From positions 434,001 to 498,000 of the forward strand of contig JBLDXI010000031.1 of assembly GCA_047495785.1 (NCBI GenBank): a DNA stretch of 64,000 bases. Direction: 5' to 3'. Below, piece by piece: positions 8,807 to 31,799 of the stretch. Numbering within the stretch: position 1 is the stretch's first letter; the number at the start of each line of letters is the position of its first letter. The position numbers and the translations under genes are program-made. The notes under the pieces were generated by a model that was given only the letters and a program-made list of their open reading frames with translations, did not search any database and had not been told where the DNA came from. The stretch comes from Lepidodermella squamata. Lineage: Eukaryota; Animalia; Gastrotricha.

Positions 8807-11797
8807 ATGTTTGCAATAGTAACTATAACACTAATAGCTATTGGTCTTCAAATCGAAGCGAAAGTTCCATTCAGAAGTTCGCTACCTAAGCTTATCTCAG
8901 CTTCAACCTCAAATGCATCCGTTCAGTCGGACGAAAGGAAAATGATCAAATTATCGGCTGCGATTCCATACCTGGGCCCACTGATTTCGCTAGGAGCGAC
9001 TTGCACGGAATCTATGAAAATAGGACTGGACAACATGCGAGCTCTTCCCAACTTCCTAACAGATTATGAAATCGTTATCGAGCCATATGAAGATTACGTA
9101 AGCCTTTTCTTTAACTTGATTGGTTTATCGAACTTAAATGCTGAATCTAGTGCGCTCGGCAAATAACTATAGCAGGTTATATGGGATTCCTGGAAAGATC
9201 GAAAACACCGAATAGCAGCTATTTCCCATTATCTCTTGCGTCATTCTGCCCCGGGAACAGCCATACTGGCTTGATTTCACTCCATCAGAACGTGCTACAG
9301 GTAAATCCGGATCATTTTCCAAATTCGCTCACTATATCTTCTAATCTGAAGTTAACAGAAGTGAGTGCTGCTCCTGAAGTCTACAACGACCGAAAAGCTT
9401 ATAGAAACCTCTATTTGATGATGCCATCGCCAAGCGCGGCTGTTGAATCAGTCGCTTGGTTTTGCATGAAAATGGGCTGGAATCGACTATTTATGTTCTC
9501 GGAAAATGTTGACTATGCTAATGAAGTAAGTTCCCCCAAATACAAATTCTGTCAGATTGATAATTTGATGATCCATTAAGTCGATTCAAAGTACTTATAG
9601 ATGGAACTTCAACTTCCCCTCTGAATTTCTAAATCTCCTTACAGAATCACGTAGTTCAAAATATTGTATTCAAATGTTTTGCAGCACAATGCCCGAATAA
9701 TGTCCGAATTCGATCGTCTGAACATTTCCTATTCGTATCAAACGGTCAAAATGCCATACATGGGTGGCCTACCTCCAGATTCCGAATCTTTGGAGCGTTA
9801 TGTTGGCGAACTAGCGGCTCTGAACCCTCGCATTATCCTCGTCGAGTTGGTCATTCTATCACGAGCAGCCTGCTGGTTCCACAGGTACGGCCTTTACGGG
9901 CCTAACTACGTCATTATCATCACAAACGGCGGTTTATTCGACGAAAATGACTTTCTGCGCTTTCAACCTTGGTGCACATCCCAGATGTTGCGAGAATTTC
10001 TTCAAAGCGTCATTAGTTTTGGTTACTCTAACGTGATAAACAGTGCTTTAGATGGAGGGGCGAGTTACCAGGATTTCACGGGGATGTCTGGCAAAGAGTA
10101 TGACGAGGCTCTGAAAAACGCAGTCGAAGGTGCAGATAGGCAGCCTGTTTGGTGGTTCTGGCGTTCATTTTGCTACGACAACATCCTGGCGGCTGGTTAC
10201 TTACTCAACGCAACGGAAGCTAAGCTGAAAAATCGTAATTAAAAAAAACAATCCCATATCCTGCTAATTGATCCTTTTAGAAAGTGAGACCTTAAGTGAT
10301 TGGTTAATGGACGGAGCTAAGTTTCAAACGAATGGAAAAGACTTAATACAAACTATGAGATCCATTCTCGACCACTCTTCTATACGAACGATGCTAGGCG
10401 AGGTGACATTCGATAAGCGCATGAAGTTTGCCTACTCGCAGATGCAGTTGAAGACGGAAGAAGGCGTGGCGAAGCTCAGTCCAATTCCTGTTGCTATTTA
10501 TGAAGTTGACGCTAACGAACGGAAGTCGATGAAATTAGGCCCGGGAAAGTTCGTTTGGCGAACTTGGAATCGCCTAGCTCCTAAAGACAGTTTAGTTTTG
10601 GTCGACATCCAAACGCCTCGATTTTCATTAGCAACCTACGCAACCATACTCCGTAAGGGATTCGGACATTTCTATTTTTGTTTAACATTCAATTTCTCGC
10701 TTAGTTTTCAGCGTGTCTGAAGTAGTCCTGATAATTGGGTTGATATGCCTCCAGATTTATCGAAATGGATTTCCGGTCATGGAAGATCTTTTTTCCACCT
10801 TTTTAATCTTTTCAAGTGACATCATTCTTCAAGGGTTTGTTCTCAGTCAGCGATACAACGGCAAAGCTTCGGAGCTGCTTCCATCCTGCAAAGCATCATT
10901 TACTATGTTAATTTTCGGTTTAGTCTCACTATTTTTCGGCTATTGCGGGAAGTTTGAGGTTTGGTACCTGGAGCGGAAATCGATGATTTCGAAAAGTACG
11001 AGTTCCGGGCATGTTTCGCAAAATCATCTGGTCCACAACGATACTTTCATCAATGCTGTTACCCTTAAAGTCCCAAAAGTTTACAAAGTCAAGCCAGTAA
11101 CTAGTTTTGAAAAGCGAAAACTGGTGAAATTACGCAGCTTGCTTGTGATCCTTATCAAAATATGCGTGGCTACGCTGGTAGCTGTGGTAGTCTGGTTGGA
11201 ACAAAGCCCGATTTCGATTTTGCGAGCGTATGATAAAGACGAATCTTACTCAAAACATGCTGCGATCACCTATCAGTACCACAGCCTGAATTGTTCGATC
11301 AACGAGAATTGGGCTGTTTACCTGTTGGCAGGGACGATCTTCACAATTTTAACAGCTCTCATTGCTCGATCGGTCTATCTAGTTTTCAGACTTCAAAATG
11401 TAAGTTGAAAATGATTCCGTTGACATATACTTATTTTCATTGTTTTAGATAAAGCTCCATCCTCAAATTAGGGCTGTAAAGATTTTATCAAACGCATTTT
11501 TTGCGACAACCACACTCATGGCAGCAATTTTGCTTGTTTCCGCGGCAATTTTCCGAAGTGAGGACGCGCAGCTGGAACTATCAATTTGTGCTTTCGTCTT
11601 GATCGCCCCGATTATCAGCGTTGCAGCCCTATTCATGACTGAGGTATTGTATTTTGTAAATCACATTCAATGCTATTTTAAGGTTAATATTTCAGGTTTT
11701 CCAACGGAAGCATCGCGTATTGAGCCGTTGCAACACGCAGCATATGCAACTTCGTTCGGCGTTCCATTCTGCAAACCCACAATTCACAGATTTTTGA
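8807..11797 (+). CDS. Class C GPCR (GABA-B-like) 'R-C', 8 exons
   Basis: ORFs 8807, 9181, 9664, 10268, 10713 and 11518 join in frame through GT-AG introns. Shares MMPSPSAAVESVAWFC and WRSFCYDN with paralogues. Last exon is 11696-11797. Confidence 0.88.
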
Positions 11798-12323: not shown

Positions 12324-13193
12324 TCAAGCCCCCCTGGTGCATTTCTCAACATAGAACGAACCGGATGTTGACGTGGGGGCTCCATAACTGAATTGGACGC
12401 CATCGGTTCCTGCGATAAGATTGGAGCAGCATGCAGCGAAGCTAGCAGAGGCCAAGCTATTGGGAGTAGCAGGTAGTAAATCATGCTGTGAAAGAATGAC
12501 ATTCATACAGAAAGCCAAAGTGAATATTTATCAGTGTGCGAAGTTTGATTCTGAAGCTGAGATGCTTTCCTCAGCCGAAGAAATCAAAGGTTCAGCCTCC
12601 TATATGCATCGCATGTTAATCAAACGCACCTGAATCGTTATTCCAACGGTGTTAGTCTCACAGCTAGATGGGAATCGCAAGCAATACCCAGCGGGCGCAG
12701 AGCCGCAAGCTTTGAAGGGCCTCGCATCAGTGCCAACTACACCGCAGTAGGACACCATAGTTGAATTTACCGATATGACATCGTATATCGTTGTCGTCGC
12801 GGTTCCGCCAAGAGATGAGCAGCAAAGCTCGAACGAAGTCGCCCCAACTCCTGTCGAAACGCCGCCCAAGTTACACAAGCCATTTCTGGTGCAGTATTTG
12901 AGGGTGGCTGCCACAGGGGAAGCACCTATTGTTGCGACTGAGCAACCGGCATATGATGTCTAGGATAACGAGCCGTGAGCCTATTTCTCGAAAGAATATC
13001 TATGACTCACTGTTGGCGGTTGACAAGTTTGTCTCGCCAAGGCACAAGTGTTATCTGCATAGCAGACTGTGCTTGCCGGGCAAATACCTGTGGCGCAATT
13101 AGTGCTAGCAAAAGTTCCGATAGATGTCGACGCTGGACAGGTGATGGCATAACTGAAGAAGGACGCAAAAACCGCAAACAAAGTAACGACCAT
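12324..13193 (-). CDS. Secreted 18-Cys protein, type A, copy A1 (~224 aa)
   Basis: Exons 13193-13011, 12959-12630, 12485-12324, all phase 0. Signal peptide then CPAST; YCLRFPSSCET motif; ends EKCTRGA*. Confidence 0.88.
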
Positions 13194-13533
13194 TTTTAAT
13201 TGAAAATTCTAACTTGTGAGCTTTCAACGCCGCAAGAATGAAGAGTTTATCTGCGGACAGTTGCGGAAGTAAATGCGTTATCTTATGCCTTCATACATGT
13301 CTCATAGCTGTTCAATTCGTAGTTTTTCAGAGAGTTCACACTCGAGCGAAAGAATTGAATGACGACACGCACATTAGCATGAAGCTTGCACCACAGCGAC
13401 GGCGTTTATAACATTAACAGTTGAATACAAGTTTAGACTATGATTCGACCGAAATAAAATGAGTCAGTTTCGACAATTTCGCTACTTTCCCGCGGAAGAG
13501 CAACCTACCGCTTCTGGTTGGCAGGGCAACGAC
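13194..13533. promoter_or_regulatory. Putative bidirectional promoter of the A1/B1 pair, homologous to the other pair spacers
   Basis: Alignable with 21450-21849 (TTGCGGAA-TA-ATGCG, GCACATTAGC, CCGAAATAAAATGAG). Contains TGAGTCA, an AP-1-like site, near 13460. Confidence 0.6.
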
Positions 13534-14344
13534 ATGGCGCTAGCTGATAATCAAAGGACGAATCAGCGGCCGAAGAATTATAATACCCAGCACTATATTA
13601 GGCATTATTTCAGTATTTTGTTTACGACATGTTTTCTTCACGCCTCGTTCGCTTGCCCCGCGTCTACAACTGCATCAACGAACTGTGCGACTGGTGTTTG
13701 CCAATCGGGCCAATCGTGCCGAACAATCAACCAGTGCGATATTAGCGGTCAGAGTTGCTCGGATGTGAGTTCTTCCTTATTCGAGCTTTAATACCAGTAG
13801 CGTTACATGCCATTAGAGTTACATGTCATGCCGTGTGGCTACTGTCGGCGGGACTGGCGTTGGTTTGAAGGAAACTAACGGCATCAGGTATTGCACGTAC
13901 ACCAAATCATGCGCTCTCGGTGGCAGTACTATTGCTCAGACCTACAACAGCTTCGAGGCGTGCTGCACGGGAATAACTGCTCAGATCTGGGATGTTTTCA
14001 CTGTCAATGGGCAGAAAATAGAGGCCTGTCTTAGTCCCACATCAGCCGATACCAGACCCCACAAAGTCTGCGCTGGTGCTTACTGCTTGCGTTTCCCGTC
14101 GTCTTGCGAGACGAATTTTGTTGCACTCAGTACATACCCAGTAAGATTTTATTTGAAATTTTCTTATTGATTTTGCAACATTAAATCACGACAGGTTGAT
14201 ACTTTTCCGTATGGCGTTTTTCAGTACAGCTCTTTTGCTGAGTGTTGTGCACGCTTAAACAAAGCTACCGAAACAGTGATGGTAAATTCGGCAACAACTG
14301 CAACGGTTAGCGGTTTCCCAGTCGATAAATGCTTGAAAACCTAG
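13534..14344 (+). CDS. Secreted 18-Cys protein, type B, copy B1 (start codon uncertain, 13459 or 13534)
   Basis: Exons ..13764, 13817-14140, 14195-14344, phase 0. Hydrophobic leader then CPASTT; ends VDKCLKT*. Confidence 0.85.
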
Positions 14345-14704
14345 AATCGCGAGATCGAAAGGTCAACCTTTTCATGGTATTGATCCATCTGCGGCTAATG
14401 TATCGTTGCTATGTAGTTCTGTGAAATTTCGTGAAATACAATGTACCGATGATTTTATTTATAGTTGGCTATGTGATATTTGATCACGGTTCGGGCTCCG
14501 CTTACAGTTTGAAGTTACTCAGTCCTCCTCCTCCCCCTCCTAGTCTCCTGGCTAGGGGAATCGAAACACACTTCGACGGAATTGATTAAACGCCGAATGT
14601 CTCAGTTGTTCGGCGGAAACATCTTTCGAGCAATCATTCTGAGATCCTATTAGCTGATGTTCACTGGAAATTCTAAGTCTTCAAAGTATTATCAAATAGT
14701 GATA

Positions 14705-15271
14705 CAGTGCGCCCTCCATAAATGCGCCCTCTGTAAATGGAAAACCTCCGTAAATGCAAGCGATTTTGTCTCCCGTTTATTTTATTTGTTGAAAAATTAT
14801 TTTTCATTAAAATAAAAATTTTAGTTTGATTATTTATATTAACGGTGAAAAAAACAGGCGTCGTTAGCAACGAAATTTCAACGCTGCGGGCAGATTTCTA
14901 GCTTTTTTGACTAGACGGTCGCGCGGTGTTATCTCACCCAACACCCAACCTCTCGATCTTTACAGACCGTTGTTTTTTATAAAGTGCATTGAAATTGCGA
15001 ATCAACAAAATCGTGCGCACGCGATTTTCCGAGTTTTTGCTTTTTACAAATACTACAACCCACTCAAATCAATGAAGTTTACTGAATTCGTTCCAGCTTA
15101 TCTTGAAACATGGCTAACCACTAAAATCATCGTCGCCTTGGCAACTATGAAAAAAACTTAGCGACGCACTTATGATTCATCGCTAGCTCTTTAACAGCCC
15201 TCTATAAATGCAACCCTCCATAAATGCAAACGCGTGTCTCCCGACCGTTTGCATTTATGGAGGGCGCACTG
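14705..15271. mobile_element. Tc1/mariner-pogo-type MITE
   Basis: Perfect 21-bp TIR CAGTGCGCCCTCCATAAATGC, TA target duplication, and subterminal CCTC(C/T)(A/G)TAAATG repeats. Confidence 0.93.
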
Positions 15272-15933
15272 TATTAGGTGATAACCGACCCTTACAATCA
15301 TCCAATGAAATATCGGATGATCCATAATCCATAATTCGATGATTTGTTAACTAAGATGACTTATAAATAAATAAGTCATCTGACTGATGTATGACCCACT
15401 ATTCATTGTAAGAATTCTTCCTGCGCTGAATTCAGAATTCAGTTGACAGTTGGCTGTTTCTGCGCAGTGGAGACGAAAGACTGTAGTGCTTAGGAATCAA
15501 AATTTGAAATTTGATAAATTTTAAATCAAGCGGCCATTCTGCTCCAATTTAGGTGAACACAATACACAATACTGGGACAACACTGTTGTAGCTTGTCTGA
15601 ATTAAATGCCGCTAATTTCTTTCATAGCTCCCTCGCCAAGTGGTCGACAGCCCGCTTAGTCTCGATAGCTTTTACCTCGACAATACGGAAACAATTGATG
15701 GAAACTCGAAAAGGTATTGTTTCCATCAACTTTCACTGGGTTTTAGTTGCCTATCTACGGTTCAAAGTAAATTTGCAGTGTGGCTGTACTGAAAATCTTC
15801 GAAAAACTTCGAAGAGCTCATTTCCGGCTAATTGGCCGCACAGCGATAATTCAATGACTCATTTTTAATCTAATTCAAAATTCTCAATACATCACACGTT
15901 GATGCCAGATGCCAGGCATTCGATGTGTCCGAT

Positions 15934-16190
15934 TCATCCTCTAGTGCATTTCTCCACCGTAAATGCTCCGACTGTTGCTATGGAAGGTGCATTGCTGAAC
16001 GTGAGGCCAATTGGATTCTAGGGCAAGGGACGAGCAGCACTTGGCATACGTGGAATGAGTGAATTGTCCGGTAGGAAGCGTATCTTCAAGAATAAGCTGT
16101 CAAGAAATAATTTCTATTATGAAGAAATCTAATATTTATTGGAAAATACTGGTGTGGATGATAGGGGAATGTTGTGTCTCACAGCTGGGT
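15934..16190 (-). pseudogene. Remnant of a type A gene (end of exon 2 and a frameshifted exon 3)
   Basis: Reads DTLPTGQFTHSTYAKCCSSLAL, then a +1 frameshift, then GLTFSNAPSIATVGAFTVEKCTRG*. An SCET remnant lies near 16170-16190. Confidence 0.8.
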
Positions 16191-16280
16191 AAGACCTTCG
16201 GCAATAATTTTTCATCGCCAGAAATATATCACTCAAAAGAAGCAGTTATGACTTCTACCTTCGTAATCAGATATCTTATA

Positions 16281-16467
16281 TCGCTGGATGGGCGCCAGAA
16301 CGGCTTGCTAGAATAGAAACAAATGGCGTAAAACTTAAAACTAACTTCTTGCATCTCGGCCAAGTTGGTCGCGTGCCTGGTCATTAAAACGCCAGTTTTT
16401 TGTGCGTCAAATGCATTGCGCCATATGTTTCTATTATAGGCAGGTCGTTCTGTCGCCCACCCCGCGA
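16281..16467. mobile_element. ~185-bp MITE, copy 1
   Basis: Degenerate TIR related to TCGCGGGGTGGGCGACAGAACG, flanked by TA. Same element as 22737-22920 in the opposite orientation. Confidence 0.85.
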
Positions 16468-16689
16468 TATTAAAGATGAATTTTTGCAGTTCTTGACATT
16501 AGAGCAGCCAAGAATGGAGCTAGCAAGTCCATGCGTAATAATTCACCTATACCCTATACCGATGGCTCGAATATGTTGCCGCGAATTTGAAAAGAACAAT
16601 CTTAACAATACGACATCGTCATTTGAACTCATTATGGGCATACATTGTTTCAGTCACAGGCCGCAGTTGGCATGGGTGAGATTCACCTT

Positions 16690-17486
16690 TCAGCCTCCTC
16701 TCGTGCATTTATCAACCGTGAATGCCCCGGTTGTTGTGGCAGTCGAAGCGCTAAAGATGATGCCGGTGACTCCGAGGATGAGGGAGGAGCAGCACTTAGC
16801 ATAGGTAGAATGAGTGAATTGTCCGTTAGGAAGGGTATCCGATTGCGAAAGAAAACTTTATATATTACAAAGAGCCTAATGCTTTACCGAAAAACTACCG
16901 TCGTGGATGACAAAGTACCAGCATTGGTCTGGCAGCTGGAAGGAAATCGCAAGCAATACGCAGCGCCAGCAGCACCGCATACTTTGAAGGGAGCCGCGTC
17001 GACAACGGAGCTGATGATACTACAGTACGACACCCAATTCGAAGTTGAATTAACCGATATTATATCGTTTATCAGCGCCGATGAAGCGGTCGCGCCGAGA
17101 GCTGCGCAACAAAGGTCGAACGAAGTGGCCGAAATTGGTGACGGAGAGATGATCGGAGTACCGCCCAATTTGCAAAAGCCCGTTCTAGTGCAATACCTGA
17201 GAGTTTGTGCGACAGGGGGAGATCCTATCGTTGCGACTGAGCAACCGACATATGATGTCTAGGGGAAAAGTTCTTGATCATATTTCTAAAAAGTCGTATG
17301 ACTCACGATTGGCGTTTGGCAAGTCTGTGTCGTAAAAGCACAGGTATTAGGCGCGAAACATGCCGTGTTAGCTGGGCATATACCCGTGGCGCAATTCGTA
17401 CTAGCAGCAGTAGTGGTTGTCGGAGGTGGGCAAGCGATAGCTGAGCTAACGATGCATGCCAATCCCGATAAGATTGTAACGATCAT
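16690..17486 (-). CDS. Secreted 18-Cys protein A2; last acceptor is AA instead of AG, so it may be defective
   Basis: Exons 17486-17307, 17258-16899, 16842-16690. All reading frames are open and all 18 Cys are retained. Confidence 0.72.
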
Positions 17487-18333
17487 GTGAAATAAAAAAT
17501 TGTAGATGACGCTTAAGAGGAGCAATTTGACGACGGCAACTTATTAGCTTTAAACACCAGTGAGTTGGGGTTCTCTGCTGGAAACTATGGTTTTGCACGT
17601 GTCAGTATGAATGTGTCACCGCTATTCAATTCATATTCCTATTTCCTCCACTGTCGTGGGAAACTAGTACACGTGGAATTACAGCGCCGTTTATTTTATT
17701 ATAGTTAAGTACCTAATTACTATTTTTCAAACCGGAATAAACATGACTCAGCTGTGAATCCGTCACCTTGTTATTTTTACGCATCTATGTAAAACTTTGC
17801 GCCAGGCAGAATTATTTATCGGCTTGAAGGCTGCCCAAGGCAGGCATTTTCAACTTGAAAATTTAATTCATCCTTAACCATTACTATATGTTTTTCGGTT
17901 TTTAGCAGTATAAAAAGACATTACTCCCCAAGGACAACGTCGATTTAGACTTTAGAAATGACCTTTCCTGAATTGTTTGTCAGGGGCGGAAACTTTTGAG
18001 TCAGGAAACGAACGAATTTAGAGGACCCTCTGAATTAATGTTAAAATCGCAGCTCCCTTTTCTTTGACTCCATGATTTTATAATTATGCTATTGATCATC
18101 TGAAAAACTGAAGTATGGAATTTTGAATTCTGATTAGCCCGAGGAAATGTGCCGAAATGCCTCTGATCCTATACTCACTTTCTACCTTTTGAGATTTTCT
18201 CAAGCGCAATATTATTGTGGGCCGCCTCTGATTTATTTTCTTTTGTTTAATCAATGGATTAGAGGAGTCATCTTACATAACACGGTGGTACTTCGGGAAG
18301 AATTTACTGTGCTGCCTGTCTGCCTTATCTGAG
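17487..18333. promoter_or_regulatory. Putative bidirectional promoter of A2/B2, with an unrelated internal segment at ~17790-18195
   Basis: Homologous to 23872-24160 and 26291-27157: TTTTG(C/A)ACGTGT E-box-like site, GGAATTAC(A/G)GCGCCGTTTATT, TGACTCAGCTGTGA. Confidence 0.6.
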
Positions 18334-19164
18334 ATGCCATATTATGGACAAAATCTGTTGGCTAGTCAAAAGCTATCAGTTCATCCTTTTCACCTTAATG
18401 TTAACCAACGTTCTCTCCCCTTGTTCACTATTTTGATTGTGGCATGCCTCGGTGGCTTATCATTAGCCTGCCCCGCCTCCACAACAGCTGCTACAAGCTG
18501 TGCGATAGGCGTTTGCCAATCGGGCCAATCGTGCCGAGCCGTCAATCAATGCGATACGAGTGGCCAGACTTGCTCAGATGTGAATTTGTTCCTATACTAA
18601 CTTTCATACCGTAACAAACTTACAATAGAATTTCATGTCATGCCGAGTGGCTACTGTCGGCGGAACTGGCGTCGGTTTGTCGGAAGCTAACGGCATCAGG
18701 TATTGTACGTACACCAAATCTTGCGCTTTGGGTGGCAGTACAATCGCGCAGACCTATAACAGCTTCGAGGCGTGCTGCACGGGAATAAATGCTCAGATTT
18801 GGGACGTCTTCACTGTCAGCGGACAGAAAATACAGGCCTGCCTGAGCACCACAAAAGCCGATTTCAATCCGTACAAAGTCTGCGCTGGCGCTAACCCATA
18901 CTGCCTGCGCTTTCCTTCGTCTTGCGAAACGAATTCCGTTTCACTGAGCTCGACACTGGTGAGATTTATTAACAGTCATTAGTCGTGTACTAGACTTCAA
19001 TATCACGATAGACTGACATCTCACCGACTGCCTATTTCCAGCACACCACTTTTGTTCTGTGCTGCGCACGATTGAACAAAGGCGCACCCGGAATAGCGTA
19101 CACAGACTCGGCATCATCCGCAACCTTTGGCGGTTTCACCGTCGACAAATGCATGATAGCATAA
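18334..19164 (+). CDS. Secreted 18-Cys protein B2
   Basis: Exons 18334-18579, 18629-18958, 19012-19164. Ends VDKCMIA*. Confidence 0.87.
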
Positions 19165-19769
19165 TAAAAATATCAGAAGAGGTCGACATGTTCTCGATAC
19201 TGAACTTTGATTATGATTATGTATTAAATTTTTATAATTTTTAAATGTTTAACATTTAAAATCTTGCTGTATCTTCTTCCGTACAACGCTAAAGTCTGAT
19301 GATGAAGATGGTCCTGGCCAGGTTGATGAGATTTTCGATGACTACGCGCGATGCACGCTGAAGGATGCAAAAGAAGCCGTGAGAGAAGAAGATAAATACC
19401 TATGGACCTTGCCCCACCGAAGTAAGAAAGACCCCTTACTTTTTTTGCCGGTTCAACCGCAACAAGAGCTACCATCCTTGTCCAGCTAACGGCCGGCTAA
19501 AATATAACGGCTTGAGAGCTACTAACAATGTGCTGAAGAATGAAAATACTGAACGAGTTTTACAAACGGTCAGCACTTTCTTGCCCATAACCTTCGAAAT
19601 CACGCGAGACTGGACATTCCACTTTGAAGAGTGGGCGACTTCTCTGAAAACTACCGTTAGAGAAGGCACCACTGCTTAATCTTACTACCTCAAGTTCGCT
19701 GATCATTACAATCAGTGGCTGTGGCTTCCTTGTGATTGTACAGTCGACTATTCAGTTATTATACCGCTC

Positions 19770-20060
19770 GTGCTCGAGCGATAAGCGATAACACAATCGA
19801 AACGGGTGGAAAACTCGGCCCGTCGGGCCGAGCGTTGATTCAGAATTCAGAATTTTGCCTTTGCTTTCGAAGAATTCGAGATTTCGGTGGTCGGTAAAAA
19901 CAAGTGGGCCTTCCAGTAACATAGTGGCGCCATTGCTCCAACGCGACTTTGATTGCCAGGAGTTCCTTGTCGAAAATGCCGTATTTTTGTTCAGCCTCAG
20001 TAAGGCTCCTCGAGTAAAAAGCGAAATGATGAAGATAACCATTAGCCGCCACTTGATGCA
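19770..20060 (-). mobile_element. Decayed Ty3/gypsy LTR-retrotransposon pol fragment (RNase H)
   Basis: [35 protein letters not shown], followed after frameshifts by [10 protein letters not shown]. No LTRs recognised. Confidence 0.9.
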
Positions 20061-20370
20061 GCCCTCATCTCATCTCAACTCGCCTCCGGCTTGTTTCGAT
20101 TCGTTAATCTCGGTCGGCTCCGTTCAGATATAAACTCTTTACTCATGTTATACCATACAAATATATAATTTCATTTCACAGTTTGTTTAGGTCTACATTT
20201 AATCGTCTATCGCATATCGCGAAAAAATTCTCGCCAAATCGTCAAATCGCCAAATCGCGCCAAATAGTTGATTCATGTCAAAATGGCAATGGTACCCTTT
20301 TCATTTTAATATTACTATACATATTATAAATTACGCACTGATGCCATACATATATTCGATGTGTCCCATT

Positions 20371-21449
20371 TTAATATCCTCTCGTGCATTTCTCCACCGA
20401 GAATACCCCGGTTGTCGCCGTGTTAGCCGAGGTGCTGAGCGTGAGGCCGTTTGTTCCCAGGGCTAGAGAGGAGCAGCACCTAGCGTACGTAGAATGAGTG
20501 TATTCTGCGTAAGGAAGCGTATCTGCCTGTGAAAAAATGGAAGCCATATTTTTCGAATAAAATCAATACCGAATGACACGAGCTTAGCTGGCGATATTTT
20601 TACGTTACTTAGACAGAAATGGTCCACGCTTCACTCAAATGTTGGTAAAACCTGGGTCTCCGAGCCAGGGAGAGCAGTCATCCCAGCCCGGGACGTTCTG
20701 TCGTTGGAGCAGGACAACCCTTTGCAACCCGCCTCCCCTTTTTCTCTCCCCCTCTCCCGGCATTTTCTACACTGAGAGTAAGTGAATTGGGAACTAGGAA
20801 GCGTAGAACCTGCCTGTCAAAGAAATATGAGTTTAAATGAGTTTAACTGAAATCGTACTGATGTGGCTGACAAAGGCACGCTGCTTGTCTCACAGCTGGA
20901 TGGGAATCGCAAGCAATACGCATTTCCAGCAGATCCGCATACTTTGTAAGGAAGCGTATCAGCTGTATTGCCAGTAAGGGCGACACCGCAGAAGGACACC
21001 CATGTTGAGTTGACCGATATGACATCGTATATCAGGGTGGAAGCAGTTCCGCCTAGAGCAGCGCAACAAAGGTCGTACGAAGTGGCCGAAATTGGAGACG
21101 GATAAGTGATCTGAGAACCACTCAAGTTACAAATGCCCATTCTAGTACAGTACTTGAGGACTTTTGTGACAAGACCATTTCCCACTGTCAGCACAGAGCA
21201 ACCGACATACGATGTCTAGGGCAACGAGCCTAATCACATTTTTCAAGCGTGAGATCTAAGACTCACGGTCGGCATCTGACAAGTCTGTGTAGCCAACGCG
21301 CAAGTGTTGTCTGCGTAACAGACCGTTTTGGCCGGGCAAACACCCGTCGCACAATTTGTGGCAGCAGCAGTTGCAACAGTTGTCGACGCTGGGCAAGCCG
21401 CAGTAGACATGGTGAAGATCACAAAGAACACTAGCATTGTCACGAACAT
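20371..21449 (-). CDS. Secreted 18-Cys protein A3 with two candidate last exons
   Basis: Exons 21449-21267 and 21215-20859, then either 20526-20371 (family-typical, ends EKCTRGY*) or 20813-20631 (chimeric). Confidence 0.82.
20636..20774. mobile_element. Short MITE-like insert truncating the proximal exon-3 copy of A3
   Basis: Family homology breaks abruptly at CAGTGTAGAAAATGCCGGG (minus strand). The other end, CAAATGTTGGTAAAACCTGGG, is an imperfect inverted match. Confidence 0.5.
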
Positions 21450-21849
21450 TATGACTCTTGAAAGTTTCAAAATTCTAGCTGTTTTAAGTTAATGCCGTTA
21501 GAGAGAAGTTAATGCCGCACGATTGACGAATATTCTCGCCAGTTGCGGAAATACATGCGAAATCTTGTGCATGTGTATATGTGCCATAGCTATTCCATTA
21601 ACTTTATTCCATTGAGTGTACAGTCGAGAGAAAGAATGAAACCAGGACATGCACATTAGCCTGCAGGACAACGACGCCGTTAATTCTTGTCATAATTGAA
21701 TACAAATTGACTTCTAACATGATTCAACCGAAATAAAATGAGCCAGTTTCCAACATTGTTATTTGCTTAACGTATTGCACTTTAGTGAAGAGGATATTAA
21801 ACTGGCTAATTATCGGTTGACGAGTCAATGGCCAGTGAAAAATCATTTT

Positions 21850-22609
21850 ATGCATAAATATGCTCGACGATATTACTTTATTTTGTTTACGACATGCTTA
21901 AGTCGCGCGTCGTTTGCTTGCCCCGCGTCGACGACTGCTCTTACGAACTGCACGAGTGTTTGCAAAGCTGGTCAATCATGCAGAACCATCAACCAGTGCG
22001 ACGTAAGTGGCCAGACTTGCACAGATGTGAGTTCTATTATTCAAGCTTCCAAACATTAAATTACTTTCCAATTACGTCAGAGTTTCATGTCGTGCCGCGT
22101 GGCTACAGTTGGCGGGACTGGCGTCGGTTTGACAGAAGCGAACGGCATCAGGTATTGCACGTACACCAAATCCTGCGCTTTGGGTGGCAGTACAATTGCG
22201 CAGACCTACAACAGCTTTGAGGCGTGCTGTACGGGAATAACTGCTCAAATCTGGGATGTTTTTACTGTCAACGGGCAGAAAATTGAAGCCTGTCTTAGTC
22301 CCACATCAGCCGATACAAGACCCTACAAAGTCTGCGTTGGTGCTTACTGCCTGCGATTTCCTTCGTCTTGCGAAACGAAAGTCCTTACAATCAGCACTTT
22401 ACCGGTGAGACTTTATTTGCAATCTTCATAATTGTTTTTACACCATGAAATCGCGACAGGCTGATACGTTACCGTCTGGCGTTTTCCAGTACAGCTCTTT
22501 TACTGAGTGCTGTGCGCGCTTAAACAAAGCCAGCGAAATAGTGATGACAACTGCAGCAACAAGTGCAACGGTTAGCGGTTTCCCAGTCGATAAATGCCTG
22601 AAAGCCTAG
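21850..22609 (+). CDS. Secreted 18-Cys protein B3
   Basis: Exons 21850-22026, 22081-22404, 22460-22609. Leader MHKYARRYYFILFTTCLSRASFA; ends VDKCLKA*. Confidence 0.87.
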
Positions 22610-22736
22610 AACAGCGGAATCGATGGGACGCAATTCTCGGTATTGATCCATCTGTGGCTGCTGTATTGTTGCTTCTGTAGCTCTGTGTTACACATTTTCT
22701 CAATCCGTCTCATGAATTTGACCGATGATACATATA

Positions 22737-22920
22737 TCGCGGGGTGGGCAACAGAACGATGTGCCTAGAATAGAAACAGATGACGTAATGTATTTGATGC
22801 GCAGAAAAAAACTGGCGTTCTAGTGATCAGGCACGTGACTGACTTGGCCGAGATGCAAAAAGTTAGTTTTACGCCATTTGTTTCTATTCAAGACAACTCG
22901 TTCTGTCGCCCACCCCGCTA
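22737..22920. mobile_element. ~185-bp MITE, copy 2 (inverted relative to 16281-16467)
   Basis: TIR CGCGGGGTGGGC(A/G)ACAGAACGA in a TA-repeat context. The interior is the reverse complement of copy 1. Confidence 0.88.
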
Positions 22921-23569
22921 TATATATACTTGGCTATTGAAAAATGGAAATAATTCAAGATAAATCAAGAAGAAAAAATTGTTTTGCAAAGTTTTCCTAA
23001 GACAGTAAATCCCACATTAATCTCGACCAACTACTGCGGCAAAAAACATTTATTGCAAACATTTTAATGGATATTGGATCGCTGGATCATAATGTTTAAA
23101 GCCGGATTCGTTGTAACCAGTTTACAATCAGCGTGCACTAAGAAACAAGGCATTTTTGGACCATTTACAATTTCGACTTAACATCGAAAAAACCTTCAGC
23201 TAAAGCTCACTTCGCTAGCGAGCTGCCATTTTATGAATTTGTTTTATGAAAGCCTCTGATCCAGAGACAATAAAGGATATAATTAATAATTGAAACTGAC
23301 CTATTCCCCATTGTTATTTAAGCTCGTTACAGAATTTACCTGACAACTAACTGCATGTATGGGAGAGTCCCGACCATTGTCACATTTTAATGAAGTTATA
23401 CGTCGTGTTTCAGTGTCAAATTCGAAATATTTCATGGCTTCGCTCGCATTCCTAAACAGTTATACATTATTAATGATGTTCTACATCTCTCTTTTTTCAC
23501 TCTGTTACAACTGACATGGGTAAATGACTTTAAAAAGCAGAGCGCTTGTCAGATTTTCATGGCTGTTTA

Positions 23570-23871
23570 ACAAAAGCGGCGTCGAAAAAATAGCGCTATT
23601 CGTCTCGCAGCTGGAAGGAAATCGCAAGCTATACGCAGCGCCAGCAGCCCCGCATACTTTGAAAGGTCTTGTTTCGACAACGGAGTTGATGATATCACAG
23701 TAGGACACCCAATTCGAAGTTGAATTAACGGATATTATATCGTTTATCATCGTCGATGAAGTGGTCGCACTGAGAGCCGCGCAACAGAGATCGAACGAAT
23801 TAGCCGAAATTGGCGACGGAGAGGTTATCGGAGCTCCGCCCAAGCTAATATTGTAACGATATTGTAATCAT
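23570..23871 (-). pseudogene. Deleted A2-like gene (A4); its B partner is lost
   Basis: The ATG at 23871 is followed by an early stop and fused into mid exon 2 (LGGAPITSPSPISANSFDLCC...YSLRFPSSCET). No exon 3. The promoter is retained at 23872-24160. Confidence 0.85.
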
Positions 23872-24331
23872 GCGAAGTGAAAAATGACAATTGTTGATGA
23901 AATTTAGGTAAGCGATATGACGGCAACTTAGAAGCTTTTAGCACCACACGAGCGAGTGCTCTGTCTTGCAGGCGACACTTTTGCACGTGTGATAAGGAAT
24001 GTGCCGTCGCTGTAAAATTAATATTCCTATTTTCGCCACTGTCGTGTGAAACTAGTCCACGCGGAATTACGGCGCCGTTTATTCTAATAACTGAGTAACT
24101 TCTTATTTATCTAAATTCATGAAGTCAGCTGTGACTCCGTCAACTTGTTTTTTCTACATCTCATTGTGTTACCACTTAAAATTTCAATCCGATGCGCACA
24201 CTGATTGGTCAATCGATCGTTCCTCGGTGCTATGACTCCCGGATGAAACATTATGAGATTTCATCCATGAGATTTTTTTGCAACAAGTGTTTGTTTTTTG
24301 CCGCAGTAATTTACCACGATTAATATGGAGT

Positions 24332-24640
24332 TTACGCTCGTGGAAACCCTGTTGTCGCAAGGTCATTTTTTACATGAATAGAAAATAATGTAATAATGGC
24401 GGCCCCAGTGCTGAACTGGACGCCATTGGATCCTGCGACAAGATTGGAGCAGCAACCAGGATAGCTAGCCGAGACGTAGCGACTGGGGCAGGTAGTAAGT
24501 CTACCTGGGAAAGAATTACATTCTTTGCATTCCTTCATTGCTGGACAACCACCCGTTGCGCAATTCGTGGCAATGATCGCAACAGTTTTCGACGCTGGTC
24601 AAGCGATAGCATAGATGGCGAAGATCGCCAACAATAAGAA
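24332..24640 (-). pseudogene. Deleted A1/A6-like gene (exon 1 fragment joined close to exon 3)
   Basis: LLAIFAIYAIA*PASKTVAIIATNCATGGCPA has the first Cys codon changed to TGA. Exon 2 is absent; exon 3 reads SASYPGCCSNLVAGSNGVQFS. Confidence 0.82.
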
Positions 24641-25496
24641 CAACTCACAAGATGACGCTGACTGCAAGTGGCGTAGATTACATAAAAAAGCAAATTCCGC
24701 GTCAGATTTCCGCGGCTGCTTTGAAGAGTTTATCGGCTGTTTAACGGCCTAAAAGCCCTGAAATTGAAATTTTCTAACAGTTATTTCTTCCTTTTCTTTT
24801 CAACTATTTTTCATATCGCTCACCAGAGATTTATCCAGCCATCCCCTACCCATCCCCTGGACATCCCCTCAAATCGAGCGGTCATCCCCTAAATTTTAGA
24901 GACAGTAATAGTATTGTGCGATTCATGACTGATCCCGTAGGGGCGGCAGCCTTAATAGAACTTACCGCAGTCTATGAATTTAGGTATTTTCTTTTGTCGA
25001 CCTTCTCGAAACAGTTAAAACAGCACTGTTATGTTAATTTGCATATTCGAATTTAGCGTGTGACTACGATAATGAGCGCGCGCACTAATGCTGGTTGCGT
25101 AACTGGTATTGCGTGCCGCATTTTGAGCGACAAATTTGAGCGCGCACACCGCACACTCGAATAAAAAGCCGCGCAACACGAAGAAAAGTGAAATAGCGCG
25201 CAATTTCTCTCATAAAATAATGTAATATAATAGAAATATAGGGGCATAAAGTGATTATCCGCGAGCGAGCGCCATAACATCCAAAACCCCTTAATTTTGT
25301 AACCCATCCCCTCAGACAAAAAGCTGGATAAACCCCTGTCGCTCACTACTCGCGATGCTCGCATGGAAGCTGAATCGTTGGGATGACATTCCATCTCAAA
25401 AAAGACAATTTTCCAATTGAAAAATTATTATAGCTTGTAATTGCCACAGATGTCATAGCTGATGCCACTCATTAGAATCCATTAGATGTCTACCGT

Positions 25497-26290
25497 TTAG
25501 GAGCCTCTCGTACATTTCTCGGCCACAAATGCTCCGGCTGTTGCTGTGATAGCTGTGTTGCTGAACGTGACGCCGTTGGTTCCGAGAACGAGAGATGAGC
25601 AGCACTTAGAATAGGTAGAATGAGTGTATTGTGCGTTAGGAACTGTATCAGTCTACAAAGGAGCCCCTTCCTCAAATTAGAGCAGCTACGTAATATTTAA
25701 TTCGAAAACGTACACTTGTTGTTGCTATAGTATCGGCTGATTTCTCGCAGCTGGAAGGAAATCGCACGCAATATGTCGCACCGGCATTTCCGCAAACTTT
25801 GAAAGGAGCCGTGTCGGTAACGGAGCTGATGATACCACAGTAAGGCACCCATGTTAAATTAACCGGTATTATATCGTTTATCATTGTAGAAGCGGTTCCG
25901 CCGAGAGCAGCGCAACAAAGGTCGAACGAGGTCGCTGAAATGGATGACGGAGAGATGATCGGAGCACCGCCCAAGTTGCAAACGCCCTTGCTAGTGCAAT
26001 ACTTGAGAATTTGTGTGACAGGTCCAGTTCCTATCGTTACGACTGTGCAAGTGGCAAACGATGTCTGGGGCAAATTTCCTTAATCAAATTTCCAAACGGT
26101 TACACGTAAGACTCACGATTGGTGTCTGGCAAGTCTGTGTCGTCAAAGCGCAGGTATTAGACGCAAAACATGCCGTGTTCGCCGGGCAAATACCCGTTGC
26201 GCAATTCGTGCTTGTAACAGATGTCGAAGGTGGACAAGCGACAGCTGAGCAAGCGATGCACGCCAAGCCCAATAAGACTGTAACAATCAT
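25497..26290 (-). CDS. Secreted 18-Cys protein A5
   Basis: Exons 26290-26117, 26064-25714, 25652-25497 with canonical splice sites. Ends EKCTRGS*. Confidence 0.88.
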
Positions 26291-27157
26291 TTGAATTGAA
26301 AAATTAAAATTGTAGATGAAGCTTTAGGTGAGCAATTCAGCGGCAACTTGAAGAGCTTTTAATACCGCACGAGTCGGGTACTTTGTTGCAGACAACTTTT
26401 TGAACGTGTCAGTATGAAAGTGTCGCCATTCAATTCATGTTACTATTTCCGCCAATGTCGTGTGAAACGAGGACACGCGGAATTACGGCGCCGTTTATTC
26501 TACTCTAAATGAGTACCTATTTTTATTAAATAAATGAATAAAAACAGTTGTGACTCGTGACTCCGCCACCTTGTCATTTCTACATCTTTGTTCAGATATG
26601 AGTCTGGTATCCATTGAAGATTTTATCGCCGAGAGCGAAGTACCGCTACCAGTTCCATCGGTCCGTACGGTGAGCTTATTCACAGACCAGAGGGGGACCC
26701 TTATGTCGATTTTTCCAGTCCCTACCAGTTCTGCAGTCCTACTTCGCTCTATGTTTTATCGTTTTAGTCTGTGTTGGAGTTCGAGTTCTGTGTTCGAGGC
26801 AGTCTGTGTTAGAAAGAATTTCATATTTTTGTCAATATCGATATAAATGTTTTAGTATTCGCTAATAAATTCTTAAGCTCGCCTATTCCTTTATTCCATG
26901 ATTTAAGAATTTCCTGCTGATACTGAACATCTACGGCTCTAAAATTGGAATTTCATTATGTCCAGGCAGATTTCTAGGACCCCAAAATAATCTGGATAAT
27001 AGACCATATTTTCATAGTGGAATCTCGTAAAAGCAATAATATTATTATACGTTGATTAACTTTCATATAGTTATCGAATAGATTAGATGAGTTATCTTAT
27101 ATAGCATACTGACACGTCGGGAAGAATTTAACTTCTCGCCTCTCTGCACTACCTAGC

Positions 27158-27991
27158 ATGGCTAGGCAGAATAAGTTGCTCAGTCATCAGATAGCCGTTC
27201 AGACATTTCACCTCATTATAAGGAAATATTCTTTCTGCCTTTTCACTAATTTGATTGTGACATGCCTGAGTGGCATATCGTTAGCCTGCCCCGCCTCCAC
27301 AACTGCTGCTACAAGCTGCGCGGTAGGCGTTTGCCAATCGGGCCAATCGTGCCGAGCTGTCAACCAGTATAAGTGGCCAAAGTTGTTCAGACGTGTGTTC
27401 TTTCCTATACTAAAGTTCACACCGTGGCATAACTTTCATTAATTATTATAGAATTTCATGTCATGTCGTGTGGCTACTGTCGGCGGAACTGGTGTCGGTT
27501 TGACGGAGGCTAACGGCATCAGATATTGCACGCTGGTCAGAACTTGCGCCCTGGGTGGCAGTACGATTGCGCAGACCTACAACAGCTTCGATGCATGCTG
27601 CACGGGAATAACTGCTCAGATTTGGGACATTTTCATTGTCAGCGGACAAAAAATTCATGCCTGCCTCAGTCCCACAACAGCCGATTCCACGCCATATAAA
27701 GTCTGCAGTAATGGCGATAATCCTTACTGCCTGCGCTTTCCTTCGTCTTGCGAACTTTTCTCCACAATCAGCTCCACACTGGTGAATTTTTATTCTGAAT
27801 AAACTGTAGCCGTTTATTAGACTTTGATAATATGATAGACTGACACACTACCGAATGGTATTAACCAGTACTCCACTTTTTCTCTATGCTGCGGACGATT
27901 GAACAAAGGTTCGCCCGGAATAACTTATTCAGATTCGGCATCATCCGCAACCTATGGCGGTTTCACGGTCGACAAATGCATGAAAGCGTAA
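27158..27991 (+). pseudogene. Type B copy B5 with a 5-bp frameshifting deletion in exon 1
   Basis: CAGT-ATAAGTGGC at ~27369 versus CAG TGC GAT ATT AGC GG in paralogues. Exons 27452-27781 and 27839-27991 are intact. Confidence 0.78.
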
Positions 27992-28441
27992 AAAAGATCA
28001 AGAGAGAGGTCGGCTTCAGGATACAAGATTACGGCATATACTTCACTCCAATTTTCTCACTCTGCACTAGCAGGGATGATCCCCATATTATTTCTCCCTG
28101 TCCCGTTACTTTGCTCTCTATGTTGAGGGTATTTCGATAAATGATATATAAATGGTTTTTTAATTTTGGGGGCGAATAAGAGAAATAAATAACTTCGACA
28201 TACATACTTCATTTTTTCAATTAATATACAATATTCGACTGTACATCTTATAGGTAACGATGGACGCAGGCCTGAGGCGCGAATATCCGTCTAGATCCAC
28301 CGATAGCACCCGGAAATTGTTCACCTATTCGAACTGCTTATTATTTGTGTCCATCTTTTTATTCTCTAAAAATTATCGGAAAATGACTAAAATTGAGTTG
28401 TGTTAACTATTTTTGCAGATTAACTCGGTTTTACTTGTGTT

Positions 28442-29214
28442 TCAGGCCCCTCTGGTGCATTTCTCAACATGGAAAGCGCCCACTGTTGACGTGGCGGCCC
28501 CGTTGCTGAATTGGACGCCATTGAATGCTGCGACAAGGTTGGAGCAGCAACCGGCATAGCTAGCCGAGACTAAACTGCCAAAAGAGGCAGGGAGTACATC
28601 TGCCTGTATAAAATTCGTTCATAAAAAATTAGAATTGCACAGAAAACGAACTATAGTAGCAGAGACTGCAGCACTGTTCGTCTCACAGCTGGATGGGAAT
28701 CGCAAGCAGTACGCAGCGCCAGCAGAACCACATACTTTGAACGGCGTCGCATCAGTACCAAGGACACCACAGTAGGACACCCACGTTGAATTGACCGATA
28801 TGACATCGTATATCGTCGTCGTCGCGGTGCCACCAAGATACGAGCAGCAAAGATCGAACGAAGTCGCCGCAGCTCCCGTCGAGGCGCCGCCCATATTACA
28901 CAAGCCCGATCTTGTGCAGTATTTGAGGGTGGCTGCCACAGGAGCAGCTCCAATCGTCTGAACTGAGCAAATGATAAAAAGTGTCTAGAACAACAAGCCT
29001 GTTGAGCATATCCTCCTGAAATGTTTGAATAGTGACTCACGGTTGGTGATTGACAAGTCTGTCTCGCCAACGCACAGGTGTCATCCGTATTACAGACTTG
29101 ACTTGCTGGGCAAATGCCTGTAGCACAATTTGTGCTAGCGGCAGTTGTTGAAGATGGGCAGGCTATGGCGGAGCTAACAAGGTATGCCAATATCCAGTAG
29201 AGAGTGGGAATCAT
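28442..29214 (-). CDS. Secreted 18-Cys protein A6
   Basis: Exons 29214-29041, 28984-28652, 28603-28442. Ends EKCTRGA*. Confidence 0.88.
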
Positions 29215-29516
29215 TTGTAGCTGAGAGTTTGAAAAGCGGAAGTTGAAGAGTAAATCTAACAGTTTGGCAGCAGCTCTTAACAGCTTTTAACAGCACAAGA
29301 GAGAGAATCTCTCGACACGTGTGGATGTTGCGAGATCTCGTGCCATTATCAATGTGTCATCGCTATATTAATTGGTATCCGCTTTGCCGTGTGAGACGAG
29401 AGCAAACAAGGTAACGTGAAGAATCATTGCGGCACATATTCTATTCATAACTGAGTGTGTATATTTTGATTAAAAACACGAGTCGGTTGCTAACGAGTCG
29501 TTGGAAGCCTTATCAT

Positions 29517-30342
29517 ATGGCTTTCTACGGCTACCAACAGGCGAGTCGAAAGCTTTTTTATTGTCATTTTCAGCAATATTTTCTGCTGCAGTACGCTATC
29601 TTGCTAGCCTCATGCCTTGTTGAAGCATCAATCGCCTGCCCTGCCTCCACGACTACTCCTACAAGTTGTGCGACTGGTGTTTGCCAATCGGGACAATCGT
29701 GCCGAACCATCAACCAGTGCGATATTAGCGGCCAGAGTTGCGCAGATGTGAGTTCTTCCTTATTCAAGTCTTCATTTCGGTAAACAGCGTGACATACCAC
29801 TAGAATTACATGTCGTGCCGTGTGGCTACCATCGGCGGAACTGGCGTCGGTTTGACGGAAGCTAACGGCATCAGGTATTGCACGTACATCAAATCATGCG
29901 CTCTCGGTGGCAGCACTATTGCGCAGACCTACAACAGCTTCGAGGCGTGCTGCACAGGGATAACTGCTCAAATCTGGGACGTTTTCACAGTCAACGGGCG
30001 GAAAATCGAGGCCTGCCTCAGTCCCACAACAGCCGATACCACACCCTATAAAATCTGCGCTGGCGCTAACCCATACTGCTTGCGTTTTCCTTCGTCTTGT
30101 GAAACGAGTTCATCCGTGATGAGCTCAACAGCGGTGAGAGTTTATGAGAGTTTCATCTTGTTATTTCTAGATCCCTTTAATAAAGACAGGCCGACTCGGC
30201 ACCTGCTGGAACCCTTTCTTACAGCTCATATGCTATGTGCTGTGCGCGCCTGAACAAAGGCGCGCCTGGTATAACATATTCCTACTCGGCAACATCAGCC
30301 ACTTACGGCAGTTTCGCCGTCGACAAATGCTCTAAAGCATAA
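29517..30342 (+). CDS. Secreted 18-Cys protein B6 (start uncertain)
   Basis: Exons ..29747, 29804-30133, 30190-30342. Ends VDKCSKA*. Confidence 0.85.
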
Positions 30343-31799
30343 CTATATTATGCAAGATCGAGAAAGGCCTACTAATAACGTGTACTATTAGCTTGCGGCA
30401 ACCTTCATTCTATTTTTCTCCTTTTGAAGTGGACGCTTGGAAGTTTGGAGTAAATATTTTCTCATCAATGAACCTTTTTCTCCCTCATCGTCCCATCATT
30501 GTATCATTAATATCCTTGCGGCTGATACAAATTTATCGAACTGAAATACGCGCCTTACTCAGTGGCTTCATGCTTATCTGGAATCATGACCCAAGTAATT
30601 CCAACGTGGTTCGTGGTGTATCAGAAGAAATGCTGCCCGAAATCAATGTCATTTTAATGCTTGATCCAACAAACCACGTTGAATGGCTCATCGCTCATTG
30701 AGAATCTTTCCGAAGATGAATATCAAAGTTGAACTGATCTTCACTTGGTATTCATTCGACGCTAATTGTGCTATATTTGTAATGACAACAATAAAATGTC
30801 TCTGAAACATATTCTTCCAACTCGGTCAAAGATCAGCAGGGAAATATTTATTGCAATGCAAACGGCCTATTTCCTGTTTCTCGAAAAAATCTTAAACTTT
30901 TTCAAAACTAACAATGCCAAATACATCTTTCCTATAAATACAGTGATGTTATTGACGGTATATCGGGAAAGGTATCGCGTGGTAGCTCGTTCAATTGATT
31001 GCATCCTCTTACATCCTTCGAAAAGGTGCCTTTTCGACCTGGTTCTTCGACGGTTTTTCGAGCTGTAGTTCATGACGGTGTTTCTCGCCCGCTGCCGTCT
31101 CTGCCTTCGAGTGGATTTGTTCTGTCCCCCGAGCTGCATTTTTGTTTCGTGGTAATCCAATGCGAATCTAAACTGTAATCAAAGGACCTCATCAAACCTA
31201 ATCACTTTGAGTGCAGCTATCATAGAAACTACCCCGATCAGACGTAACTGATTGCTTTTAGCGTCTGATTGAGATGCATTATCTGAATGAGGTTAACGTG
31301 TGCAATCAACAAAGATCGAAATGCTTTTCAGACCTGCCCTGATCACGTTAGAAAAATGTCAAATGAATCCCGTTTGCCGGTGTCAGATCCTTTGAGGCTA
31401 CCGGCACCGAAAATCTTTTGGATTAAAATTGAATGAGTAGAAAAATATTACCGATTGCTGCTAGACTTACATATTCTTTTGTGCCAGCCAAACTGTTTGT
31501 CGGCATTTCCAGATTAGTTTTCAAATTAGGTTTTCGAATATACATGTTTTCGTCAATAATAACAGTTCAAGTCGGGGCAGACGTTTTGTTTCCTGCTAAT
31601 TATCACGTTTTATACTTCCATGCAGCCAAATTCTCAGCATAAGTTTGTTTATCGGACCTGTGTCTGCTATCGATTTGGCTTAGTTACCAGAATTAGATGT
31701 TTGGGTGGCATGCATCGCTCTATTTAAGGCTAGAAATGGTCTTGACAGTTATTTTGAACTCTTTTTAGCGATTATCTAACACAAGCTGACTTGAGTGCC

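Follow-up and report, generated by a model that had tools for sequence, protein, structure and literature searches.

A tandem array of head-to-head gene pairs encoding two classes of an unrecognized 18-cysteine protein in the gastrotrich Lepidodermella squamata

In a 64,000-nucleotide stretch of the genome of the gastrotrich Lepidodermella squamata (GenBank assembly GCA_047495785.1, contig JBLDXI010000031.1, positions 434,001 to 498,000 of the forward strand; hereafter the window, to whose numbering all coordinates refer), we characterized an array of five head-to-head gene pairs at positions 12,324-30,342. Each pair consists of an A gene on the minus strand and a B gene on the plus strand, which encode two classes of a cysteine-rich, predicted secreted protein. 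Copies were found from a list of open reading frames (ORFs), by tblastn queries taken from the exons of a single pair and by scanning six-frame stop-to-stop segments with exon-level hidden Markov models (HMMs), and all three approaches agreed; exon borders were set from homology and splice sites. In pair 1, A1 (12324-13193, minus strand; exons 13011-13193, 12630-12959 and 12324-12485, including the stop codon) encodes a protein of 224 amino acids (aa) with an 18-aa signal peptide and 18 cysteines in its mature part. Across a spacer at 13194-13533 lies B1 (13534-14344, plus strand; exons 13534-13764, 13817-14140 and 14195-14344), whose 234-aa product has a 40-aa N-terminal region before the sequence CPAST and again 18 cysteines in the mature part. 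Pair 2 is made up of A2 (16690-17486; exons 17307-17486, 16899-17258 and 16690-16842), its spacer (17487-18333) and B2 (18334-19164; exons 18334-18579, 18629-18958 and 19012-19164), and pair 3 of A3 (20371-21449; exons 21267-21449, 20859-21215 and 20371-20526), its spacer (21450-21849) and B3 (21850-22609; exons 21850-22026, 22081-22404 and 22460-22609). Pair 5 comprises A5 (25497-26290; exons 26117-26290, 25714-26064 and 25497-25652), a spacer (26291-27157) and B5 (27158-27991; exons 27158-~27392, 27452-27781 and 27839-27991). The last, pair 6, comprises A6 (28442-29214; exons 29041-29214, 28652-28984 and 28442-28603), a spacer (29215-29516) and B6 (29517-30342; exons 29517-29747, 29804-30133 and 30190-30342).

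The spacers of pairs 1, 2, 3, 5 and 6, measured from ATG to ATG, are 340, 847, 400, 867 and 302 bp long. The initial annotation of this DNA had described five A(-)/B(+) pairs with start codons ~0.3-0.9 kb apart, two phase-0 introns common to A and B, and no B gene without an A gene; the measured range of 302-867 bp, splice-site and alignment checks, and an exon-level HMM scan of the window bear out all three statements. The gene structures are established: each of the ten genes has three exons, and the two phase-0 introns fall at identical alignment columns in A and B. Introns are 48-61 nt long in 18 of 20 cases, the exceptions being A1 intron 2 (144 nt) and A3 intron 2 (332 nt), the latter enlarged by a repeat insertion. 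A short dispersed repeat within A3 intron 2 (20555-20656) resembles an inverted copy near 50 kb (50268-50370) at 81% identity.

Every intact copy encodes exactly 18 cysteines after the signal region, distributed 6+9+3 by exon, and the motifs CP(A/S/P)(S/P)T and YC(L/V)RFPSSC(E/Q) are found in every copy, as expected from the cysteine framework and common N-terminal motifs first noted. The A proteins begin with a classical 18-residue signal peptide, and 23-45 residues precede the CP(A/S)ST start in the B proteins, B3 having a short region of 23 aa. At the B6 ATG (29517), contigs from an RNA sequencing run, X1, extend upstream, and the stretch that they cover contains no earlier ATG. The mature proteins are ~190-215 aa long and consist of 24-30% Ser+Thr, ~20% Ala+Gly, ~9% Cys and 8-12% charged residues, with a positive grand average of hydropathy (GRAVY) and an isoelectric point of 5.6-8.1. 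A conserved N-glycosylation sequon, VNST, is present in A and absent from B. In both classes the chain stops soon after the last cysteine, with no hydrophobic tail, and the proteins probably contain nine disulfides. In every A and B gene, exon 2 and exon 3 each contain the motif x-S-F-x-x-C-C-x-x-L, with a single cysteine ~25-30 residues further on. We do not claim an internal duplication relating exon 3 to the middle of exon 2, for which hhalign gave a probability of 24% over 17 columns. The paralogy of A and B is established, and the two are distinct sequence classes, as originally proposed: they share 36-44% identity, compared with 55-72% within A and 61-82% within B, and they form separate clades in the tree (support 88/92 for A and 77/88 for B).

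We found that the ratio of non-synonymous to synonymous divergence (dN/dS) was 0.15-0.45, with a synonymous divergence (dS) of 0.4-1.6, in all pairwise comparisons within A and within B, and B exon 2 retains 79-87% nucleotide identity among old copies. The copies are old and have been kept by purifying selection. Transcription was assessed in one sample, run X1, at low depth and without quantification. Contigs from this run match A6 exons 1-2 and B6 exons 1-3 with the 3' untranslated region, and one of them skips 56 nt with GT..AG ends, so that B6 intron 2 (30134-30189) is spliced. The contigs reach 29236 on the A6 side and begin by 29463 on the B6 side, which places the transcript starts of pair 6 at most ~230 bp apart. 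No X1 contig fell on A5 or B5, and the spacers were bare save for a repeat at 26569-26735. In one bin at the end of A6 exon 2 (28674-28739), X1 depth was ~630; the contig there matches only from 28674 on and is unlike the sequence before it, and it probably derives from an abundantly expressed paralog elsewhere that shares the conserved stretch coding for YCLRFPSSCE.

DNA self-comparison showed that the pair is the unit of duplication. Pairs 1 and 3 form a single colinear 1849-bp alignment (72.5% identity) that extends from exon 2 of A1 across the spacer and as far as the B1 end, and their spacers are 67% identical, against ~44% in shuffled controls. The alignment of pairs 2 and 5 covers A with 300 bp upstream and B with 100 bp upstream; their spacers are colinear at both ends, with an unrelated centre of ~450 bp. 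The dS values of the two halves of this duplication are equal (0.40 for A2-A5 and 0.41 for B2-B5). These results agree with the initial annotation, which had taken the pair to be what was copied. It had also called for congruence of the A and B trees, and this was found in part: the grouping of A2 with A5 (support 94/94) mirrors that of B2 with B5 (89/91), but B1 is a mosaic, so the history is not clean. Intron 1 of B1 resembles that of B6 (81%), its intron 2 and exon 3 resemble those of B3 (81-87%), and the nearest relative of A1 is A6. Such a pattern is what exchange between units, by recombination or gene conversion, leaves behind. As for the origin of the pair itself, the paralogy of A and B, together with their common intron positions and cysteine framework, makes an older inverted duplication, suggested at the outset, the simplest explanation.

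Between the pairs we found three A-type remnants that had escaped the initial annotation, none with an adjoining B. An unpaired A-type exon-3 fragment (15937-16099, minus strand) carries a frameshift and is a pseudogene remnant. A4 (23580-23867, minus strand) is a truncated A exon 2 fused to A-type upstream sequence; its exon 1 is lost and a framework cysteine has been replaced (YSLRF). A4' (24335-24643, minus strand) joins remnants of A exons 1 and 3 in a chimera that is interrupted at the first cysteine by an in-frame stop and lacks a B partner. Among the paired copies, the acceptor of A2 intron 2 is AA rather than AG (16843-16844), and A2 may be defective or use a non-canonical splice site. 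In the window, a frameshift interrupts B5 exon 1 after 27367. At that position five additional letters occur in run X2, which is probably a DNA run; they would keep the B5 frame open, and the break is thus an assembly error or a polymorphism. A high-copy repeat inside the pair 5 spacer (~26569-26902), at a DNA-run depth of 600-1600 compared with ~100 nearby, probably accounts for a spacer length of 867 bp instead of 300-400 bp. Two transposon-like sequences also lie within the array: a foldback element resembling a miniature inverted-repeat transposable element, with inverted ends of ~60 bp, downstream of B3 (22729-22928), which has an inverted copy (82%) downstream of A2 (16277-16470), and, between pairs 2 and 3, a piece of a retrotransposon's reverse transcriptase/RNase H region, recognized by its motif (19752-20052, minus strand). 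The possible defects in two of the ten copies, along with the three fragments that are clearly dead, are what could be said for viewing these sequences as chance ORFs or a decayed repeat. That view is refuted by 18 invariant cysteines in ten genes and in a homologue from another species (see below), by dN/dS far under 1, by conserved GT..AG introns and by spliced RNA, and we regard it as almost certainly wrong.

The window holds two further relatives, both outside the region first annotated. R35 (35006-35983, minus strand; exons 35726-35983, 35530-35664, 35207-35476 and 35006-35146) is an intact, divergent member, which we call C-type; it has an additional intron, and its N-terminal cysteine-repeat module is longer. 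It lacks two framework cysteines (...KVC... and ...SSC...), and their joint loss suggests that these two normally bond together. R39 (~38651-39597, minus strand) is a tandem copy of R35 with 81% DNA identity over 1.3 kb; one cysteine of the CC pair in its exon 3 is lost, and this copy may be decaying. Neither R35 nor R39 has a divergent partner. Outside this genome, an exhaustive search of 1.84 billion representative proteins with an exon-2 profile returned one true relative, P0001, an unannotated ORF of 227 aa that lies on a Logan contig of 929 nt (SRR30674226) from another organism. P0001 has a signal peptide, the 6+9+3 cysteine framework, a CPSS start and the motifs YCVRFP and SFxxCC, with identities of 29-35% to A, B and R35. 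Its ORF is intronless and the contig ends in AATAAA, indicating an mRNA of that other organism. Two other candidates from this search, P0002 and P0003, were leucine-rich or simple repeats and not relatives. In the tree, P0001 and R35 group together against A+B (100/98), although both branches are long, and we take the grouping as no more than a lead. Should it be right, the A/B pair would be a later invention than the unpaired form; P0001, known from its 929-nt contig alone, would then side with the unpaired C-type gene rather than with the pairs.

Searches for a named family agreed with the initial annotation that the proteins belong to none that could be recognized, P0001 being the sole relative recovered from Pfam, PDB, Atlas, clustered-protein and metagenome searches. 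No Pfam family matched P0001 or any A or B exon at E≤1 or at E≤10, and R35 gave nothing near threshold. The best Pfam scores were 14.5 bits for EGF_LRP2 (cut-off 30), 10.6 for WAP (20.8) and 7.1 for Granulin (20.9), and we rejected membership in EGF, granulin, WAP and similar disulfide-rich domains since every score lay far under its curated cut-off. A word-indexed search of 5.8 billion clustered proteins with B6 exon 2 and P0001 found no relatives, ESM Atlas queried with P0001 gave a top score of 0.65 and no family, and two metagenome contig scans yielded no confirmed member. There was also no match in a PDB sequence search, in an Rfam scan of the window or in a literature search on the protein motifs. 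AlphaFold2 (AF2) modelling of P0001 gave a predicted local distance difference test (pLDDT) score of 40, which is unusable. For B1 exon 2, the top AF2 model was beta-rich, its only helix lying at SFEACC (pLDDT 64, predicted template modelling (TM) score 0.56), and the other four models were much worse; Foldseek comparison of this top model with AFDB clusters, PDB and Atlas gave TM ≤0.36 and E ≥0.38, and with so weak a model a known fold may have been missed. The 18-Cys protein family is new to the databases searched and appears lineage-restricted, with members so far from this genome and from a single transcript of another organism.

The genomic principle, by contrast, is already known. By organisation, the closest known system is the A/B gene pairs of silkmoth chorion, so the layout itself is not new. 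In the silkmoth Bombyx mori, 21 HcA/HcB pairs with 330 nt between the two genes are interspersed with unpaired pseudogenes and undergo frequent gene conversion, and the A and B products are made together (PMC4639761). As in chorion, the array described here consists of two paralogous types of one superfamily that are divergently transcribed from a short common region, in a pair that is tandemly repeated as a unit, with unpaired pseudogenes among the pairs and signs of gene conversion; the products are also secreted and cysteine-rich, like the Hc proteins. The two systems have no sequence relationship, no A or B exon having a Pfam chorion match. Two phase-0 introns interrupt each gene of the array, whereas a chorion gene has a small first exon and a single intron. 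Chorion proteins are fibrous and Gly/Tyr/Cys-rich, unlike these 18-Cys, probably knotted proteins, and the array is made up of far older copies (dS 0.4-1.6) that have been less homogenised.

Our leading reading, which we hold tentatively and at somewhat less than an even chance, is that this is a birth-and-death tandem array of divergent paralog pairs whose A and B products are co-produced and act together in extracellular material. An unpaired ancestral gene resembling R35/R39 and P0001 would have undergone an inverted duplication, yielding A and B on either side of a spacer of ~300-400 bp. This A-spacer-B unit would then have been tandemly copied at least five times and later reshaped by recombination or gene conversion, transposon insertions and the loss of copies. 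The common short 5' region would hold a pair of core promoters, arranged back to back and activated in concert, so that A and B enter the secretory pathway of one cell in similar amounts and act jointly outside it. Most likely, the two would assemble jointly into a coat, shell, cuticle, adhesive, mucus or similar extracellular material, in the manner of the silkmoth chorion proteins. Coordinated expression driven by the spacer, physical cooperation of A and B and a structural role are inferences. The nearly uncharged, Ser/Thr/Ala/Gly-rich and heavily cross-linked composition, taken with the chorion analogy, suggests that a single type of secretory cell produces both proteins. Low charge, high Ser+Thr and Ala+Gly, positive GRAVY and ~9% Cys fit a material better than a soluble signal, making a hormone-like function less likely.

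Direct support for joint production comes from a single observation, the presence of A6 and B6 contigs in the same RNA run. Co-expression, which the initial annotation had inferred, is thus partly supported, by one pair in one small, low-depth and unquantified run. Several other points also weigh against the reading of A and B as partners made jointly. Pairing is not needed for the fold, since R35 and R39 stand alone. Spacer conservation is limited to related units, spacers 1 and 3 being 67% identical and spacers 1 and 6 at background; no k-mer of 7 nt or longer is common to all five spacers, which have TATA-like and GAGTCA-like blocks loosely in common. A and B, for which the initial annotation had proposed a heterodimer or two-component action, show neither complementary charge nor co-varying indels, and the structural role is proposed from composition and analogy. 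Some of these observations would be expected if the arrangement were a historical by-product, in which an inverted duplication was followed by tandem copying, and A and B were independent sub- or neo-functionalised paralogs that are not required to be co-expressed or to interact. The unpaired members, the lack of a motif common to the five spacers and the absence of A/B co-variation beyond their shared duplication history would all follow. However, purifying selection has preserved the A gene and the B gene alike in all five intact units, whereas the A copies of the array that stand alone are all pseudogenes; a short spacer, with a core of 300-400 bp, has persisted through old duplications (dS 0.4-1.6); and A6 and B6 appear in the same RNA run. 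We therefore consider the by-product explanation possible but on the unlikely side.

Head-to-head pairs of small secreted proteins are also known from fungi. In Fusarium oxysporum, AVR2(SIX3)-SIX5 and SIX8-PSE1 encode small secreted cysteine-containing proteins in head-to-head orientation from one bidirectional promoter; Avr2 and Six5 interact physically and act together, but binding between head-to-head partners is not obligatory, as SIX8-PSE1 shows (PMC8101498). Unlike the genes of the A/B array, the Fusarium partners are not presented as paralogs, and they form single pairs (a 'minicluster') in a fungus with no sequence similarity to the proteins described here; no SIX or AvrLm10 homology was found in Pfam or among the 1.84 billion representatives. 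It is conceivable that the A and B proteins serve in defence or offence as disulfide-rich secreted toxins, antimicrobials or interaction proteins, with the array providing dosage and diversity. Secretion, high cysteine content, multiple copies, lineage restriction and birth-and-death dynamics are all consistent with such a role, and toxin-like clusters occur among weak Atlas feature neighbours, at scores of 0.54-0.65 that are not significant. Against this, a dN/dS of 0.15-0.45 and the conservation of B exon 2 (79-87%) are the opposite of the usual diversifying pattern of toxins; the proteins are large (~200 aa), nearly uncharged and Ser/Thr/Ala/Gly-rich; and Pfam gave no toxin-family match. 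We judge a defensive or offensive function to be improbable.

The 18-Cys genes are surrounded by and interleaved with six largely intronless genes resembling class-C G-protein-coupled receptors (GPCRs), which the initial annotation had not mentioned. They lie at 833-11408 (three genes, at 0.8-3.2, 5.1-7.4 and 9.2-11.4 kb), 31791-34597, 41579-44092 and 51883-53832 (-), and were recognized by Pfam (ANF_receptor) and Atlas (7tm_3+ANF_receptor). Two copies on opposite sides of the A/B array (1435-3156 and 32429-34597) are 82% identical, and a word-indexed protein search with a flanking GPCR query returned no relatives at E≤1e-10. The Atlas clusters nearest to the GPCR by features carried diatom labels. 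Both the embedding of the 18-Cys genes within a GPCR array and the similarity of the flanking copies would fit a linked cluster in which the A/B and C-type proteins are secreted cues for these lineage-specific receptors, but their low-charge, hydrophobic composition would be unusual in a diffusible cue, and we think this connection very improbable. A more elaborate version has a parallel in Tetrahymena thermophila, where MTA/MTB are tandem, like-oriented head-to-head pairs and one recognition function needs both genes; these encode transmembrane proteins, the germline pairs are incomplete and are finished by programmed DNA rearrangement, and each specifies a mating type (PMC3608545). By analogy with such mating-type arrays, each A/B pair might be a two-part secreted recognition cassette, a binary mate, kin, self/non-self or settlement cue that is read by the interleaved class-C GPCRs, with pairs differing in specificity. 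In contrast to MTA/MTB, with their transmembrane anchoring and shared terminal exons, the A and B proteins are predicted to be soluble, having no hydrophobic tail; all their genes have full exon sets and show no trace of rearrangement. We hold this proposal to be more doubtful still. Elsewhere in the window, three long ORFs at 59641-63732 (plus strand) contain repeated PAN/Apple domains (PAN_1, PAN_4), with kallikrein/factor XI-like Atlas neighbours. Two adjacent ORFs at 54501-55567 (minus strand) resemble, from their translation only, pieces of a piggyBac-type transposase, and consecutive ORFs of 171 and 237 aa at 46898-48177 (plus strand) are rich in Lys, Glu, Ser and Ala, with repeated 'KRPATAA' units and a C-terminal cysteine cluster.

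If A and B are indeed co-produced partners, the array would be an independent second case of the chorion solution, reached with unrelated proteins in a different organism: two extracellular components are supplied in fixed proportion by an inverted duplicate around a short control region, and the pair is amplified as a unit. It would also provide a compact natural bidirectional promoter, with no more than ~230 bp between the transcript starts of pair 6. A structure of these proteins, together with their location, would define a new extracellular domain with 18 conserved cysteines and without detectable fold relatives.

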